Below, piece by piece: positions 19,228 through 32,433 of a DNA stretch of 64,000 nt (position 1 is its first letter; each line of letters opens with the position of its first letter). The DNA is from Bugula neritina (Eukaryota; Animalia; Bryozoa). The notes under the pieces are model-generated. The model saw only the letters and a program-made list of their open reading frames with translations, had not been told where the DNA came from and did no database searches. The stretch lies in NCBI GenBank assembly GCA_964035545.1, contig OZ037766.1, positions 31,734,773 through 31,798,772 on the forward strand, given 5' to 3'. A program made the position numbers and the translations under genes.

Positions 19228-22200
19228 ATGGCTGCAACACACATGAATAAAAATGTTGCTTATTTAAAATCTCTAATTGTTTTGCTTATTTATTTGGCAA
19301 GCTTCACTCAAGCAAGCCTGACAGGTACTATATTAAACCTATTATGTTGTGCTAGCTTAATTTTATCATAATTCACATTGATAATAATTGTATCTTTATC
19401 CTCCGTCTACTTAAATGTATTTATCTTTATTTAAGCAGCAGATTTTTGAAATGTAGCTCTATATTTAAATATTACTCGTTGGATTTCCTCTATTTAAGAT
19501 ATATTCGACAGAACCTGCAGTGGGCAGTACCACAACAACAGCATTCAATATGTACAGTACCAGTCTCAGGAATTCTACTTCTTGAGATTACTCTACAGGG
19601 GCTGCTCATTTGTTCTTGGTGACATGCATATTCACTGGAGGCATTTCACATATGAACCATATCCTGAAATGTTTCACAAAGAATTCTTTAACAGTATCAC
19701 AAGAGTCCAAGGACGCCTGTTTATCCGCGGGACTACTGGTTTAGTTATCTAATAACTGTTTCAAGTGTGAATACTTTTAAATAAAATTATCCAGTTGGAG
19801 AAACGCTATAACATATAGTGTAAAAGTTAAAGGATTTTATTAAAATGGTTGATTTGTTGAGCTATGATGATTATAGAAGAGATGTACTATAGAAAACTTT
19901 TTTTGGTAAAAAAACTATAGCGCAAACAGTTGTTTTATTCTATAACTTTGGCTTGAAAACTTTAATATTTTAGCTAATGACTTTTCTTCTTTTGATTTGA
20001 TGTAAAAATAGATTTGTATAGGTTTAGTCCAAATATTCATGTTTGCTTCAACACAACCTATTTTTAAACTTGCTTAACATCATGAATGGCCACCTTAATT
20101 ATTTATCTTGTTTTAAGAGAATAATGTGATTATATTTCAAGCTATCATAAGCTTATAGTATATTTGAACAACTAAGTAATTTTGCAACAATTAAGACACA
20201 AGATAATAACTGATATATTATCAATTCCTATAGCCTCTTCCGTCAAGGAAACTGGACTAATTAATCTGATGTCAATTGGAGGGAAAACAACAGAAGGTGA
20301 ACCTCTAGCAGAAGATGCTTATTTTAGTTTGAGACTGAGTGATAGTGACAGACCTTTCTATGATCTCTATGCATTGCAAAGTGAGTAATTTAGATAGTTT
20401 ATGCAGAATAATTTCTAATAATTGTACATAATTTATAATTTATACTCAAGAGAGTTTCCAAAGCAAGTTTTACAGTTGGTTATTAGCAGAAGTTTGAAAC
20501 TGAAAGAATTCTATATGACTCAACAAAACCTTGTGTAGTATGAATGACTAATGCTGCCTATCCCCTTTCAAGCTTAAACTTTTGCATGTATAGATATATT
20601 TGTAATTAATTCTAATTAACTAGCATGTTAGATCAATGGCTTTTAATGTACACTTCTGCATCAAATCCTTTGACTTCTTTGCTTTCATCTTACAACAAGA
20701 ATGCAATATTAGAAAAGATTTGGCCCTGCTCACCCAATAATCTGGCCTAATAGTTTTCAAAACAAGTTTCATCAAATAAAAATTATTGAATTAAGGCTTA
20801 ATAGTTATTCTAATACAGTACAACTAGAAAAAAAATTTCCTTTGTTTAAAAAACCAATCTAAGACTTGATCATGCTTTAAATTGAGCATTGATATATTAT
20901 ATTAAAACAATAACTTATAAGAAAAATTTATTTTAACCTTTAGCCTCCTACTAGCAGCAGTTTATTACATGAACAGTTTCAAACACTCTGGTGTTTATAG
21001 AGAAAAACATACAAACTGTAACTTTTGGTGTTTTTGTCTTGCTATATGTCAATAGTTTGTACTAACTTATGGTTTTAGCGGTTGAAGCAGGAAACATACA
21101 CGTAGAGCCTTCCAACTGCTACACTAAAACCATTGACTTTGAGAAAATGCTAAGAAATTCAACTGAGCAAACAGTAACAGTGGTGGATAGCCAATCAGCT
21201 TGCCAGGGTAAGCACCTGAACAACAATATAATATTTTATAAGGTATGAGCAACATTTCCATAGTCCAATAGTAGAAACTTTCTAATAATTTACAAGTGAT
21301 TCAATACTGTTTTATCATAATCCAACATGGCTACACATCCTATACAGTCAAGTATTTTACAGATAATTGTTCAGTCAGTTGCAATGGCCAGTGTTGGGGT
21401 CCAGGAGAAGATAAGTGCCAGAAAATGTCTACAGTCTGTGACCGAAATTGTACTAATGGATGTTATGGTACGGCACCATCTGAATGTTGTTCTTCTAATT
21501 GTACAGGAGGCTGTAAAGGACCAGCTACTACAGATTGTTACCAGGTACGTAAAAAGCTACTATAAGAACCTCTTCAACGTAAACTTTACATTGTCGAACC
21601 TATAGAATATGGCATTTACAATAGAGATCAAAGTACATAATATTGTTTTAGTACGAAAGTTGCCCTCAATATTCTGATGTTGACGGAGTTTGTATCTCAG
21701 AATGCATCTCTGATAAATATGTTTTATATGACAAATTCTGCCTTGAAGAATGTCCAGGTAAAGTAATATAAGAGTCTGTTAACAATTTCTTTATATGTAG
21801 AAATATGTCTTCGTTATAGCTCAGATTACAGAGCGCTGTACAGCACATATTGTACTTTTTATAGTTTTGGTGTTTTATCAATTATTGAGTTGACATTGTA
21901 AGACTCAACAAAACAATTTTTAAATGCATAACTCAAATTTGCAGCGTAGTTTCAGATTTTTATCATAACACATTTATTCTAAAAGTCTTTTAAGATAAAA
22001 CACAATTGTGAAAATAAACATTGAAATTTTGTTTGAAATTTTTTTTGTTTCTAATTAGCATTAATTAAACTTGTCTTAAAGCTGGGTTTTATGAGTTTTA
22101 GGTTTTCTACGATTTGTACTTTTACATAAGCAGCTGATGCATAGAGTATTTTATATGCAAAGTTATTTCTACTTAAAATATAAATATCAAATGTTTATGC

Positions 22201-31200: not shown

Positions 31201-32433
31201 CAGTAATCATGAAATAATTTTGGGTATAATCACTATTGCTGAAATTTTATTATAAAAAGACATAGATATGTATATATTCAAACTACTGTAAATACCCAAC
31301 TGATTGCCATACTCAGTATGGTAGCTGAGTGGCCCTCAAATACAGCCTACAGTTGGACAAAGATGCCATGCACTGGCATCAGTTCATTTTCGTCTCAGAA
31401 AAAGTTGGCTTAGGTTTTGAAACTTTGGTTTATGTTTTAACTTAAAACATTATTATTAAAAATTACTGAGTTAATATTATTTAGTTAAATTATAATCTTC
31501 AATTTCTTCATTTGCTTTAAGCAATTGACATTTTGATAAAAGATAGGAATAAAGATTTTAGTATGTGTTTGTATATTTCGTTCTTTTATCACTTATTTAC
31601 AGATTGGAAACTTTGTATATGGCTGCAAAATTTATTTAAAAAGCAAAAAACCAGTTGCTGGTAATGAATATTGTGAGATTGAATACTATGAGAACATAGA
31701 AGATGGGAACAGATATAGTAATGAAAACGAGTATGATAATGAACATGATGATAACGAACATGATGATAACGAAGACGATGATAACGAGTATAGTGATAAT
31801 GAGTATGATGAAAATGAATATTATGATGAGAACGGATATTATGATAAAAACAGATATGATTCATACACAGCTACTTATGATGGCTCTTCATATTCCTACA
31901 CGCCAGCATATAATGCTCAACCATTCAGGCCGAGTGTAAACGTGTCTGGTTACAGAACACCTTCACTTAGGAACCAGAGCTTAACAATGAGACCTCTGCC
32001 TATTCGTTCACCGTCTAAGAATACAATGACCAACAGTAGATTTTCACTCTCTGCCAGCCAAGAAAAACCTGTAACTGAGGCTAACAGGAGAAAGAAAGGT
32101 CTGTTTAAAACTATAGTCAACAATAGGATATCGTCTATTATCAATCAAGGCACAGCCTCTGCAACTACAAGTTCCACTCCACAGCACAACCCAAGTTTGG
32201 GAACAAATTATAATGATCTTAGTAAGCTCATGCAAAAGTTAAACACAGTAGAAAACCTTAAAGATGGAGAAAATGAATATGACGTGATAGATGACACTGT
32301 TAAGGCTCGAAGCTATAAAGAGCTATTATATACCCACCAGGAGCAAAGCGCTCCAAGAAATAAAAAAAAGCCAAAAATGTCAAAAAAAGACAAATCAAAG
32401 AAAAGGAAGCATGGAAAAAAGCATAAAAAGTAA
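19228..32433 (+). CDS. Kinase-less EGFR-like ectodomain receptor with two inserted lectin-like domains (paralogue A, about 1212 aa, 17 exons)
   Basis: Exons 19228-19324, 19499-19738, 20234-20380, 21079-21207, 21363-21544, 21652-21757, 22259-22411, 22790-23029, 23398-23604, 24151-24408, 24830-25045, 25736-25916, 26329-26516, 27755-27972, 30207-30340, 30631-30742 and 31603-32433 total 3639 nt, in frame. Order: signal peptide; L1 (LLYRGCSFVLGDMHI...FFNSITRVQGRLFI); furin-like (CNGQCWGPGEDKCQK...CTGGCKGP); insert; L2 (GCTRVAGDL...FRNLQYVLG...LGLESLEEI...NLC); CR2 (CHEEC..C.GP...C..CKNY); TM; tail with no kinase motifs. Confidence 0.88.
22540..22590. repeat. (TA)n microsatellite; counterpart in paralogue B at about 45571-45632
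   Basis: Directly visible. Confidence 0.95.
26987..27662. repeat. Uninterrupted (TG)n, about 676 bp
   Basis: Directly visible; intron 13 of paralogue A. Confidence 0.97.
27980..30200. repeat. AT-rich satellite (9-13-bp units such as cattatatata and cattatataca) filling intron 14 of paralogue A
   Basis: Directly visible. It produces the YIHYI ORFs. Confidence 0.97.

Follow-up and report, generated by a model that had tools for sequence, protein, structure and literature searches.

The window analysed here is a 64,000-nt stretch of Bugula neritina contig OZ037766.1, and it contains a back-to-back pair of genes (Table 1). Gene A (19228-32433, plus strand) was modelled from sequence with 17 exons and 3597 nt encoding 1198 aa. 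The next gene downstream is its inverted paralogue, gene B (51805-36860, minus strand), an intact copy with 17 exons encoding 1236 aa. The introns of A are all GT-AG, every one of the 34 exons in the two genes is open with AG/GT boundaries, and the reading phases close across both genes. Position 19228, where a preliminary description had set the start of the region, is the start codon of A, and 32431-32433 is its stop codon. The splice junctions were deduced from sequence and conservation with the sole exception of the exon 9/10 junction, which is reproduced by an NCBI gene model (P0002) from the other B. neritina lineage. The predicted protein of A consists of a signal peptide, L1, a furin-like CR1, two inserted modules, L2, a domain-IV-type CR2, a transmembrane segment (TM; 24 hydrophobic residues across the exon 16/17 junction) and a tail. 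The complete signal-L1-furin-L2-CR2-TM frame in the preliminary description was borne out by the 17-exon model and the exon-wise Pfam matches, the L1 match lying under its cut-off, and the claim that paralogue B is alike was confirmed by its same 17 open exons. The text of that description omitted the insert of ~270 aa in CR1 and the candidate terminal exon 17b. Public protein collections represent the family by genomic fragments only.

Table 1. Features of genes A and B and associated repeats, in window coordinates.
Feature	Position	Strand	Remarks
A exon 1	19228-19324	+	ATG, hydrophobic core of signal peptide; donor GTACTA, phase 1; B copy open
A exon 2 (L1 start)	19499-19738	+	Recep_L_domain 18.6 bits
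A exon 3 (L1 middle)	20234-20380	+	open; splice sites retained in B and orthologue
A exon 4 (L1 end)	21079-21207	+	
A exon 5 (CR1 furin-like, 12 Cys)	21363-21544	+	Furin-like 37.3 bits
A exon 6 (CR1 modules, shortened dimerisation-arm loop)	21652-21757	+	Furin-like profile 67-100, E 0.033
A exons 7-8 (module D1, ~130 aa, phase 1-1)	22259-22411, 22790-23029	+	
A exons 9-10 (module D2, ~140 aa, phase 1-1)	23440-23604, 24151-24408	+	
A exon 11 (last CR1 modules, L2 start)	24830-25045	+	tblastn match to P0005
A exons 12-13 (L2)	25736-25916, 26329-26516	+	Recep_L_domain 22.0 bits
(TG)338 microsatellite	26987-27662		intron 13 of A
A exon 14 (CR2/domain IV, first part)	27755-27972	+	GF_recep_IV 23.4 bits
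11-bp satellite, ~199 copies	27978-30201		fills intron 14 of A
A exon 15 (CR2/domain IV, second part)	30207-30316	+	GF_recep_IV 22.4 bits
A exon 16 (juxtamembrane stalk, first TM half)	30631-30742	+	B counterpart 38822-38741
A exon 17a (second TM half, 268-aa tail)	31603-32433	+	stop 32431-32433
Candidate alternative terminal exon 17b of A	35475-36023	+	182-aa tail, phase-0 acceptor
B exon 17 (TM end, 324-aa tail, KYDEI repeats)	36860-37858	-	
B exons 16, 15, 14	38822-38741, 39170-39061, 41154-40937	-	AG/GT, open, phases close
B exons 13, 12, 11 (L2)	41715-41528, 42314-42134, 43216-43001	-	
B exons 10, 9 (inserted modules)	43852-43595, 44252-44088	-	
B exons 8, 7 (inserted modules)	45418-45179, 45816-45664	-	
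B exons 6, 5, 4	46400-46295, 46689-46508, 46968-46840	-	
B exons 3, 2, 1	50475-50329, 51534-51295, 51805-51709	-	

The donor of exon 12 (GTATAA at 25917) was chosen by length match to the L2 domain of EGFR and is retained in B and in the orthologue. At the exon 15 donor (30317), GTAAGT is found in B and the orthologue, and an alternative donor at 30341 leaves the phase unchanged. The donor GT of exon 2 is not retained in the orthologue. An AATAAA follows the stop codon of A at 32699. Intron 3 of B holds a 2.65-kb insertion missing from A. Intron 14 of B (~39.2-40.9 kb) shares the tyrosine/isoleucine-rich repeat ORFs of intron 14 of A, and the two introns align at 88-89%. In L026, the orthologous intron spans just ~55-100 bp.

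Pfam profiles were scored exon by exon; Furin-like scored over, L2 at, and L1 and the single domain-IV pieces under cut-off. The Furin-like match (PF00757, cut-off 26.8 bits) begins in exon 5 and continues into exon 6. Recep_L_domain (PF01030, cut-off 21.8) matched exon 12, and also exon 2 with 18.6 bits over profile positions 1-41, while exons 3 and 4, the rest of L1, had no Pfam match, each exon being scored alone. The GF_recep_IV (PF14843) pieces in exon 14 (profile 15-71) and exon 15 (73-104) are each under the cut-off of 29.5 alone and are colinear on consecutive profile positions. P0005, a complete EGFR-type receptor tyrosine kinase (RTK) whose own Pfam architecture is L-Furin-L-IV-kinase, aligned by tblastn with exon 11 at its residues 264-327 (E 1e-4) and with exon 14 at residues 462-532 (E 2e-5). 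Within this genome, exon 5 is 42-50% identical to CR1 of the EGFR-type genes, exon 2 is colinear with L1 of the EGFR-type RTK at C1:20.38 Mb (23% identity, E 0.001), and exon 14 is 41% identical to the same RTK with an identical exon end in domain IV. A domain IV before the TM separates the EGFR type from the insulin-receptor type, and no fibronectin-III exons were found in gene A. By a manual Cys-pattern alignment made without a structure, the dimerisation-arm loop of CR1 (exon 6) has 11 residues versus 27 in P0005, and one Cys pair is gone from the CR1 region of exon 11 in both A and B. Judged by domain order, profile matches and colinearity, A and B are descendants of an EGFR-type RTK that have kept the L1-CR1-L2-domain IV ectodomain and the TM.

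The motifs G.G..G, VAIK, HRD, DFG and APE are all missing from the last exon of A, in agreement with the preliminary reading of a last exon that runs to a stop with no kinase motif, and tail A, tail B and exon 17b matched no Pfam family. In a tblastn search with P0005 (E<=10, both strands), kinase similarity in the window was confined to 593-1295, where an unrelated RTK lying upstream has its 3' end, with none in 1.3-64 kb. Among the PF07714 matches listed, none lies downstream of that RTK, and this holds for the last 1.8 Mb of the contig as well. Onward splicing to a kinase exon, which would have overturned the preliminary description, finds no such exon in reach downstream in the genomic search. 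On these gene models, the kinase-less architecture of A and B is secure. Since they have no kinase or pseudokinase domain, A and B are EGFR-derived and not members of the ErbB/EGFR RTK family.

Four exons (22259-24408) add ~270 aa inside CR1, in the loop after the dimerisation arm. The two modules they encode, D1 and D2, had no Pfam match per exon at E<=10, no PDB sequence match and no mutual similarity, and D1 gave no fold lead in the Atlas, Pfam or PDB searches. For D2, the ESM Atlas leads were F5/8 type C, F-type lectin and DDR DS-like clusters (features 0.88-0.90), with a structure TM of 0.57-0.62 on a low-confidence model; the AF2 fold of the partial D2 domain had a pLDDT of 40. The dN/dS for exons 7-10 was 0.22-0.28. 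These model-based leads suggest that at least one inserted module is probably a discoidin/F-type-lectin-like β-sandwich.

Exon 11 of A matched 16 places on C6 (40-47%) and four on C2 at ~30.6 Mb (30-35%). Exons 2-15 match the head of a gene at C6:9.4259 Mb in order with 34-59% identity (35% for exon 2 and 47% for exon 3), and this gene repeats the exon 11-15 units five further times. The gene at C2:30.60 Mb has the same order as A, with extra exons and a Tyr-rich tail. Gene A has the traits of the family, namely an L1-CR1 head, two modules in the same CR1 loop, L2-IV, a TM and a kinase-less Tyr-rich tail. These matches indicate that A and B belong to a bryozoan kinase-less EGFR-like family that has about twelve members in this genome; we found no published description of this family in the literature. 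Three kinase-bearing EGFR-type genes are also present (C4:24.25, C5:9.99 and C1:20.38 Mb).

A syntenic orthologous locus with the gene pair is present in a second B. neritina lineage, and the orthologue of A is open across exons 1-16. For these exons, dN/dS was 0.32 between A and its orthologue and 0.37 between A and B; for the tails it was 0.32 between B and its orthologue and 0.37 between A and B. Tail B is 84% identical in amino acids to the orthologous Logan contig L027/P0032. The orthologous A tail, in a draft assembly, has three frame-changing indels, which may be assembly errors or decay. Within the ectodomain, L1 evolves fastest, with a dN of 0.09 versus 0.05 in L2. The ratios indicate that A and B are under purifying selection in both ectodomain and tails. 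Between A and B, dS was 0.073 in exons 3-8 and 10-15 (0.19 to the orthologue), rising to 0.31 for exons 1, 2, 9 and 16 and to 0.64 for the tails, the exon classes having been picked after the identities had been seen. This pattern indicates that gene conversion has homogenised most middle exons, whereas divergence persists in L1, one insert exon, the TM and the tails.

Tail A is acidic with 24 Tyr and contains five (D/E)NEY repeats and a YDVI-x8-YKEL pattern, and tail B contains four YDEI and one YDDI. Both have polybasic C-termini and conserved blocks without tyrosine. In a search of the genome, tail A matched only B. Neither tail A nor exon 17b showed an ITIM, and the loose pattern occurs once in tail B, within a repeat. 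Exon 17b begins 3 kb downstream of the stop codon of A. It starts at the same mid-TM position as exon 17a and encodes a different tail with 11 Tyr; its acceptor TTTGCAG is retained in the orthologue, its changes (34.5 synonymous versus 32.5 non-synonymous) give a dN/dS of 0.19, and it is unique in the genome. No other A-like exon was found in 32434-36860. Exon 17b could supply A with an alternative tail, a use suggested by its position and conservation. The constraint on the tails and their many acidic Tyr motifs suit a scaffold for docking or phosphorylation better than a simple anchor. Tyr-rich acidic repeats could also arise by low-complexity drift, and the repeat part differs in length between the lineages.

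Like non-catalytic receptors, A and B are single-pass, have no enzymatic domain and carry tyrosine motifs in the tail. As a whole, the observations are best explained if A and B are EGFR-derived surface proteins acting as non-catalytic, tyrosine-phosphorylated receptors, which we consider moderately probable. An ancestral EGFR-type RTK would have had its arm loop shortened and two modules added to the next CR1 loop, and a long tail, polar for the most part and with many acidic tyrosine motifs, would have taken the place of its kinase. The ectodomain would bind an extracellular ligand, possibly a glycan via the inserted modules; the tail tyrosines would be phosphorylated by cytoplasmic Src/Syk-type kinases, and the phosphorylated tails would recruit SH2 proteins. 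One ligand-binding surface could in this way be coupled to two outputs inside the cell, those of A and B, and possibly to a third through exon 17b in A. At C7:14.3715-14.3776 Mb, two SH2 matches are followed by tyrosine-kinase matches on the same strand, and several further SH2-kinase loci are present, showing that suitable cytoplasmic kinases are encoded. It is distinctly unlikely that the pair is a paired-receptor system on an EGFR fold, in which a conversion-uniform ectodomain with two or three tyrosine-motif tails, 17b included, would serve a colonial animal in self/non-self or symbiont/microbe recognition. If true, immunoreceptor-type signalling logic would have arisen independently of the immunoglobulin and lectin receptors.

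The EGFR-type ectodomain without a kinase could instead belong to decoys or co-receptors that bind EGF-like ligands of, or pair with, canonical EGFR-type kinases and so damp or modulate their signalling; such a part has been proposed for the nematode IRLD/HPA proteins, DAF-2B, fly SDR and soluble ErbB isoforms. The three kinase-bearing genes are possible partners, and the nematode IRLD proteins are thought to work in this manner, according to PMC9262388. However, the 11-residue arm loop with the 270-aa insert in the next CR1 loop speaks against EGFR-like back-to-back pairing, and a decoy has no need for a 270-330-aa tail with conserved blocks under purifying selection. L1 is moreover the part of the ectodomain that changes most, and a family of about twelve genes that differ in module number does not resemble the regulator of a single conserved ligand; we consider this explanation unlikely. 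Of the preliminary proposals, the re-use of an EGFR ectodomain on a non-kinase tail thus stood for both paralogues, with the tail constrained, whereas the decoy or co-receptor option was weakened by the short arm loop and the conserved tail.

A mainly extracellular role in adhesion or recognition is doubtful to a similar degree. The proteins would then act, for example, in telling self from non-self in the colony, in the settlement of larvae or in contacts with the symbiont that produces bryostatin, with the tail used for trafficking or cytoskeletal anchoring. A clustered, lineage-restricted and expanded family with variable L2-IV module numbers, inserts of a possibly carbohydrate-binding type, and tails with polybasic ends and conserved non-tyrosine blocks would be consistent with such a role, but dN/dS is well under 1 in each part tested, so that diversifying selection is invisible in these two-sequence comparisons, and the density of acidic Tyr motifs is left without explanation. 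It is very improbable that A and B are non-functional as modelled, either as unexpressed or decaying duplicates or with a true 3' end in a kinase exon outside the window, as the indels in the orthologous A tail and the exon 2 donor might suggest, because 34 exons are open with AG/GT in two paralogues, orthologue exons 1-16 are open, synonymous changes are in strong excess, AATAAA follows the stop codon, and downstream lie the inverted paralogue and, among the matches listed, no kinase on the rest of the contig.

Receptor tyrosine kinases are commonly viewed as fixed ectodomain-kinase units. In this lophotrochozoan, a complete EGFR ectodomain appears to have been uncoupled from the kinase, its dimerisation region rebuilt around two foreign modules, and the resulting receptor multiplied into a family whose tyrosine-rich tails differ. 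If, as non-catalytic receptors, A and B are phosphorylated on their tails in trans, the immunoreceptor principle would have been invented independently on a growth-factor-receptor scaffold. What seems new at this locus are the conversion-homogenised middle exons, the 11-residue arm loop and the conserved, selected candidate terminal exon at 35475-36023. We know of no recognition receptors described in bryozoans, and this family would be a concrete candidate. It also offers a natural experiment on the abilities of an EGFR ectodomain that has neither arm nor kinase, and the A/B pair, with one L2-IV module and compact tails, is its simplest member for cloning.

ErbB receptors usually consist of an ectodomain, a TM and a kinase or pseudokinase. 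A and B share with them the order of a putative L1, furin-like CR1, L2, domain-IV-type CR2 and single TM; A is colinear with P0005 and the animal's own EGFR-type genes and has the domain IV exon boundary in common with the gene at C1:20.38 Mb. In contrast to ErbB/EGFR, A and B lack a kinase or pseudokinase, the arm loop of A has 11 residues versus about 26, CR1 has the ~270-aa insert and one disulfide pair fewer, domain IV is shorter, and the tail has no relation to the C-tails of ErbB receptors. The IRLD proteins (including HPA-1/HPA-2) are described in PMC9262388, citing Dlakic 2002, as an expanded nematode L-domain family without a tyrosine kinase and weakly similar to InsR/EGFR ectodomains, and are discussed there as ligand binders or modulators, not signalling receptors. 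Compared by description, the A/B family is also lineage-specific, expanded, L-domain-bearing and kinase-less, but A and B retain all of the EGFR ectodomain, domain IV as well, and have two foreign modules and long Tyr-rich tails. The contrast with IRLD in the preliminary description was fair. The architecture is not an isolated case, however, as about twelve genes of this genome make up the family. Kinase loss in the two groups was presumably independent, and common descent is unlikely because they belong to different phyla.

Other kinase-less receptor products are Drosophila SDR and the soluble EGFR/ErbB3 isoforms; such isoforms and decoys are secreted or truncated and often come from the RTK gene itself. 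C. elegans DAF-2B is likewise produced as a kinase-less RTK ectodomain, as stated in PMC9262388. A and B differ from all of these in being membrane-anchored products of separate genes with their own conserved cytoplasmic tails. Discoidin-domain receptors, F5/8 type C domains and F-type lectins resemble D2 in the Atlas feature and structure leads; the discoidin-domain receptors differ in carrying a kinase, and D1 and D2 differ in having no Pfam or PDB sequence match. Non-catalytic tyrosine-phosphorylated and paired immune receptors are known as ITAM/ITIM receptors, e.g., KIR, SIRP and PIR, with Hydractinia Alr as an invertebrate analogue. The ectodomain of A and B has an EGFR fold, in contrast to the immunoglobulin or C-type lectin folds of theirs. 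Like them, A and B are single-pass without an enzyme domain, the tail of A carries a YxxI-x8-YxxL pattern, and the two are neighbouring paralogues with ectodomains kept alike, it appears, by gene conversion and with different tails.

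The predicted products of genes A and B are constrained, membrane-anchored ectodomains of EGFR type without a dimerisation arm or a kinase; the two ectodomains are nearly identical, and the tyrosine-rich tails, likewise constrained, differ. The window spans G000:C2:31734773-31798772 in a genome assembly of 216,009,554 bases with about 31% G+C. Gene A was modelled from the plus-strand stop-to-stop frames at 19.2-32.4 kb of the window, which were joined by hand via GT-AG sites. Its 17 exons close in phase to give 3597 nt and 1198 amino acids, and the ends of the model are exactly those given in the preliminary description. 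In this model, 25916 is the last base of exon 12 and 30316 that of exon 15, and the donors of both are uncertain: the first was picked by length match to the L2 domain of EGFR, and the second has two in-phase options, the earlier of which is GTAAGT in gene B and in the orthologue. The same 17 exons were found for gene B on the minus strand, all bounded by AG/GT and with no internal stops, encoding 1236 amino acids. All splice models were based on frames, splice sites and phases in the sequence, and single exons were used as database queries.

A second B. neritina lineage has a syntenic locus (GCA_010799875.2, contig VXIV02003477.1) that is colinear with the window over 13.5-37.7 kb, with identities of 75-92%. 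Exons 1-16 of the gene A orthologue were open, and the acceptors and donors were conserved except for the exon 2 donor. A 162-aa NCBI gene model from the other B. neritina assembly (P0002) agreed with the gene A model at the exon 9/10 junction. Intron 14 of A (27978-30201) was filled by an 11-bp satellite of about 199 copies, and related repeats were found in intron 14 of B (about 39.2-40.9 kb). In the other lineage, intron 14 of the orthologue measures only about 55-100 bp, so the satellite grew recently, in both paralogues. Intron 13 of A contained (TG)338 at 26987-27662.

Features of the window and related genes elsewhere in the assembly (plain coordinates refer to the window, those with G000 to the assembly)
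Feature	Coordinates	Strand	Remarks
3' end of upstream RTK	566-2928	+	
Minus-strand gene	5688-11055	-	between RTK and DHHC gene; serine/proline-rich open frames, repeated RPVSRADRPASRA-type unit at 7628-8149
DHHC palmitoyltransferase gene	14312-18524	+	directly upstream of gene A, and upstream of its orthologue in the second lineage too
Gene A	19228-32433	+	
Tandem repeat	34786-34995		looks coding, with units of about 39 bp; also repetitive in the orthologous spacer
Exon 17b	35475-36023	+	
Gene B	51805-36860	-	
Retroelement frame in intron 3 of B	47943-49316	+	457-aa open frame
Tandem repeat	52205-52954		12-bp unit, reads (SQSV)n over 750 bp; just past the 5' end of gene B
Duplicated open-frame sets	54151-57500 and 60212-63900		near-identical, about 6 kb apart; tandem duplication of another gene
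C6 family gene	G000:C6:9425897-9455006	+	loci L034, L001, L002 and L035; head of L1, CR1 and both inserts, plus six L2/domain IV units with a 3.5-4 kb period
More canonical L1-CR1-L2-IV gene	G000:C2:25166870-25173842	-	loci L030 and L033; L domain 57.7 bits, GF_recep_IV 49 bits

The domains of the ectodomain were searched exon by exon with Pfam. Exon 5 of A scored 37.3 bits with Furin-like, which is above the cut-off, and the match extends into exon 6. Exon 12 reached 22.0 bits with Recep_L_domain, at the cut-off, and exon 2 matched only positions 1-41 of this profile, with 18.6 bits against a cut-off of 21.8. Exons 14 and 15 scored 23.4 and 22.4 bits with GF_recep_IV at profile positions 15-71 and 73-104, respectively. 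Gene A is colinear with P0005, a complete EGFR-type receptor tyrosine kinase (RTK) from a public protein collection, in which the Pfam order is L, Furin-like, L, GF_recep_IV and kinase; residues 264-327 of P0005 matched exon 11 and residues 462-532 matched exon 14 in tblastn. Since the transmembrane segment directly follows domain IV, without fibronectin-III exons, A and B are assigned to the EGFR type and not to the insulin-receptor type. The best kinase-attached domain-IV match in the genome was an RTK at C1:20.38 Mb: identity over exon 14 is 41%, and the following exon of this RTK starts at the same place as in A, with the same LNT.C motif. By alignment of the cysteine pattern, the dimerisation-arm loop has 11 residues in A versus 27 in P0005. 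About 270 amino acids encoded by exons 7-10 (22259-24408, all phase 1) are inserted in a loop of the next module of the furin-like region (CR1), and from their last CR1 module A and B have lost one cysteine pair that paralogues elsewhere keep.

The insertion consists of two modules, D1 (exons 7-8) and D2 (exons 9-10). Both are genuine coding sequence, with a dN/dS of 0.22-0.28. Neither had a Pfam match at E<=10, no mutual similarity was found by BLASTP, and profile and single-exon searches of PDB sequences gave nothing meaningful. For D2, represented by P0002, the named clusters nearest by features in the ESM Atlas were DDR DS-like (0.90) and two of F5/8 type C (0.88-0.89). By structure, F5_F8_type_C and fucolectin-type clusters were matched with TM 0.57-0.62, from a weak model with pLDDT 0.56, and an AF2 model of part of D2 (P0002 residues 1-106 plus seven exon rows) had a pLDDT of 40. 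The label 'lectin-like' may serve as a lead for D2 and does not cover D1.

The preliminary description had found no kinase in the last exon of A or of B, and our searches of these exons likewise returned zero kinase motifs and zero Pfam families. Kinase exons for A or B were absent from the rest of the window as well: when P0005 was used as the tblastn query (E<=10, 64 kb), its kinase matched only at 593-787 and 1218-1295, which are part of the 3' end of an upstream plus-strand RTK. In a PF07714 scan of the genome, in which all matches but four were listed, none of those listed lay on C2 downstream of the window's own match. The stop codon of gene A is followed by AATAAA at 32699, then by a 4-kb unique spacer and then by the inverted paralogue B. 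The gene models, the Pfam results and the kinase search together confirmed the observation of a kinase-less EGFR-type ectodomain with a transmembrane segment and a tyrosine-rich tail in both genes, and we regard this predicted architecture as secure.

A split EGFR, with the upstream RTK and the kinase-less genes linked, was ruled out by the kinase of that RTK, which is closest to Kit/FLT3/PDGFR/VEGFR/FGFR and not to EGFR, and by the two genes (the minus-strand gene and the DHHC gene) that lie between it and gene A. Two more kinase matches on the same strand, at C2:31674695 and C2:31712420, precede this RTK at a spacing of 23-38 kb; the three are predicted to be a tandem RTK array directly upstream. 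No Pfam family was found in the minus-strand gene. Within the span of the DHHC gene, an open frame at 18204-18524 closes with a polybasic stretch that closely resembles how the tails of A and B end. Small contigs of the assembly (e.g., C176, C33, C66, C105 and C133) were seen to contain dozens of kinase domains without introns, with several TAA/TAG codons in frame and almost no TGA. The pattern agrees with a ciliate-type genetic code and suggests that ciliate sequences are among the unplaced contigs.

The tail of A, encoded by exon 17a, consists of 70% polar residues and contains 24 tyrosines and five (D/E)NEY repeats; YDVI-x8-YKEL lies C-terminally, and the end is polybasic. The tail of B has KYDEI-type repeats, in which YDEI occurs four times and YDDI once, and is without the C-terminal motif pair, which is conserved in the orthologue of A and missing in that of B. 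A strict contrast of an ITAM in A and none in B was only partly true and is too simple, since the KYDEI repeats of B also meet a loose ITAM spacing. Between the tails of A and B, dS was 0.64 and dN/dS 0.37, and several blocks outside the repeats were conserved. The tail of B was 84% identical to its orthologue (Logan contig L027, protein P0032), with a dN/dS of 0.32. Judged from these comparisons, both tails are constrained. In the tail exon of the A orthologue, at 15284-16290 of the draft contig, the GDNEY repeat is expanded, 1 nt is deleted and 26 nt are duplicated in tandem; the frame is shifted twice and then restored, and the homologous frames are open. These frame changes may represent an assembly error or recent decay.

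A second possible tail was found in exon 17b, an open frame that lies behind a good acceptor and shares the phase of exon 17a. It starts at the same point in the middle of the transmembrane segment (IGVF... versus IGNF... in 17a), continues with a basic stop-transfer stretch and encodes a distinct 182-aa tail with 11 tyrosines. The acceptor and the frame are conserved in the orthologue, with 34.5 synonymous versus 32.5 non-synonymous changes and a dN/dS of 0.19, and the sequence is unique in the genome. The simplest reading is that exon 17b is a candidate alternative last exon of gene A. Alternatively, it could be the relic of a third gene; no further A-like exon and no first half of a transmembrane segment were found in 32434-36860.

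A and B are inverted duplicates that face each other tail to tail, with the centre near 34.64 kb. Since the locus of the second lineage contains A plus the tail of B, the duplication predates the split between the B. neritina lineages. Over exons 1-16, the comparison of A with its orthologue gave a dN/dS of 0.32 at a dS of 0.21, and that of A with B a dN/dS of 0.37. For exons 3-8 and 10-15, dS was 0.073 between A and B and 0.19 between A and its own orthologue, and for exons 1, 2, 9 and 16 dS between A and B was 0.31, a contrast that is descriptive because the exon classes were picked after the identities were seen. The introns of A and B showed the same mosaic (93-98% versus 78-86% identity). 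We read this mosaic as gene conversion between A and B after the split, which would have homogenised most of the ectodomain and left out the first exon of L1, one insert exon, the transmembrane segment and the tails. Escape of that L1 exon from gene conversion accounts for the divergent L1 patch that had been noticed earlier between A and B. Diversifying selection in L1 was not seen, with a dN/dS of 0.36-0.42 and no excess of amino-acid changes. The open frame in intron 3 of B has zinc knuckles and a retroviral-type aspartyl protease; it is the gag-protease of an LTR-type retroelement, antisense to B and within a 2.65-kb insertion missing from A.

Exon 11 matched C6:9.41-9.60 Mb at 16 places, with 40-47% identity, and C2:30.57-30.63 Mb at four, with 30-35% identity. 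The C6 matches are not separate genes: behind a single head (exons 2-10, including the inserts) come six tandem copies of exons 11-15, and the whole looks to be one giant kinase-less receptor containing seven L domains. The exon 10 signature was found five times on C6, so about five family genes lie there, and none of the matches listed in the PF07714 scan was on C6. The gene at C2:30.60 Mb has the same order as A, with extra exons, a transmembrane segment and a tyrosine-rich tail. By these comparisons, A and B are placed as a third locus of a kinase-less EGFR-like family in the genome, and as its simplest members. The more canonical gene at C2:25.17 Mb showed no kinase similarity within the 20 kb examined and may be a kinase-less EGFR paralogue that is separate and independent.

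Beyond this genome, an exon 11 profile built from 22 copies in the family gave 31 matches in a search of 1.84 billion proteins. Only three were below E 1e-10, all short fragments of B. neritina type, and the one that was traced, P0002, belongs to the other B. neritina assembly. The remaining matches that were scanned were ordinary EGFR, insulin-receptor or furin-repeat proteins, and no full-length annotated relative of A or B was found with this profile. Searches with the tails of A and B returned one Logan genomic fragment apiece, and two weaker metagenome fragments matched as well. No description of a kinase-less EGFR-like bryozoan family was found in a literature search.

We propose that the ectodomains of A and B would bind ligand outside the cell, that the tail tyrosines would be phosphorylated by cytoplasmic kinases and that the phosphorylated tails would then recruit SH2 proteins. 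The machinery for tail phosphorylation is plausible, since the genome encodes SH2-kinase loci, including two SH2 matches upstream of a kinase at C7:14.3715-14.3776 Mb. A mainly adhesive or recognition role for A and B overlaps with receptor signalling, and these data do not separate the two. Action as a decoy is less likely, because the dimerisation arm is lost and the tails are conserved. The preliminary description had interpreted the pair as an EGFR ectodomain re-used as a non-catalytic, tyrosine-phosphorylated receptor or as a decoy or co-receptor; this interpretation is supported in part, secure in its architecture and putative in its mechanism. Kinase-less derivatives of receptor tyrosine kinases are already a known kind, and the nearest concept to A and B is that of the nematode IRLD proteins, L-domain proteins without a kinase that are believed to bind the ligands that DAF-2 or LET-23 recognise (PMC9262388).
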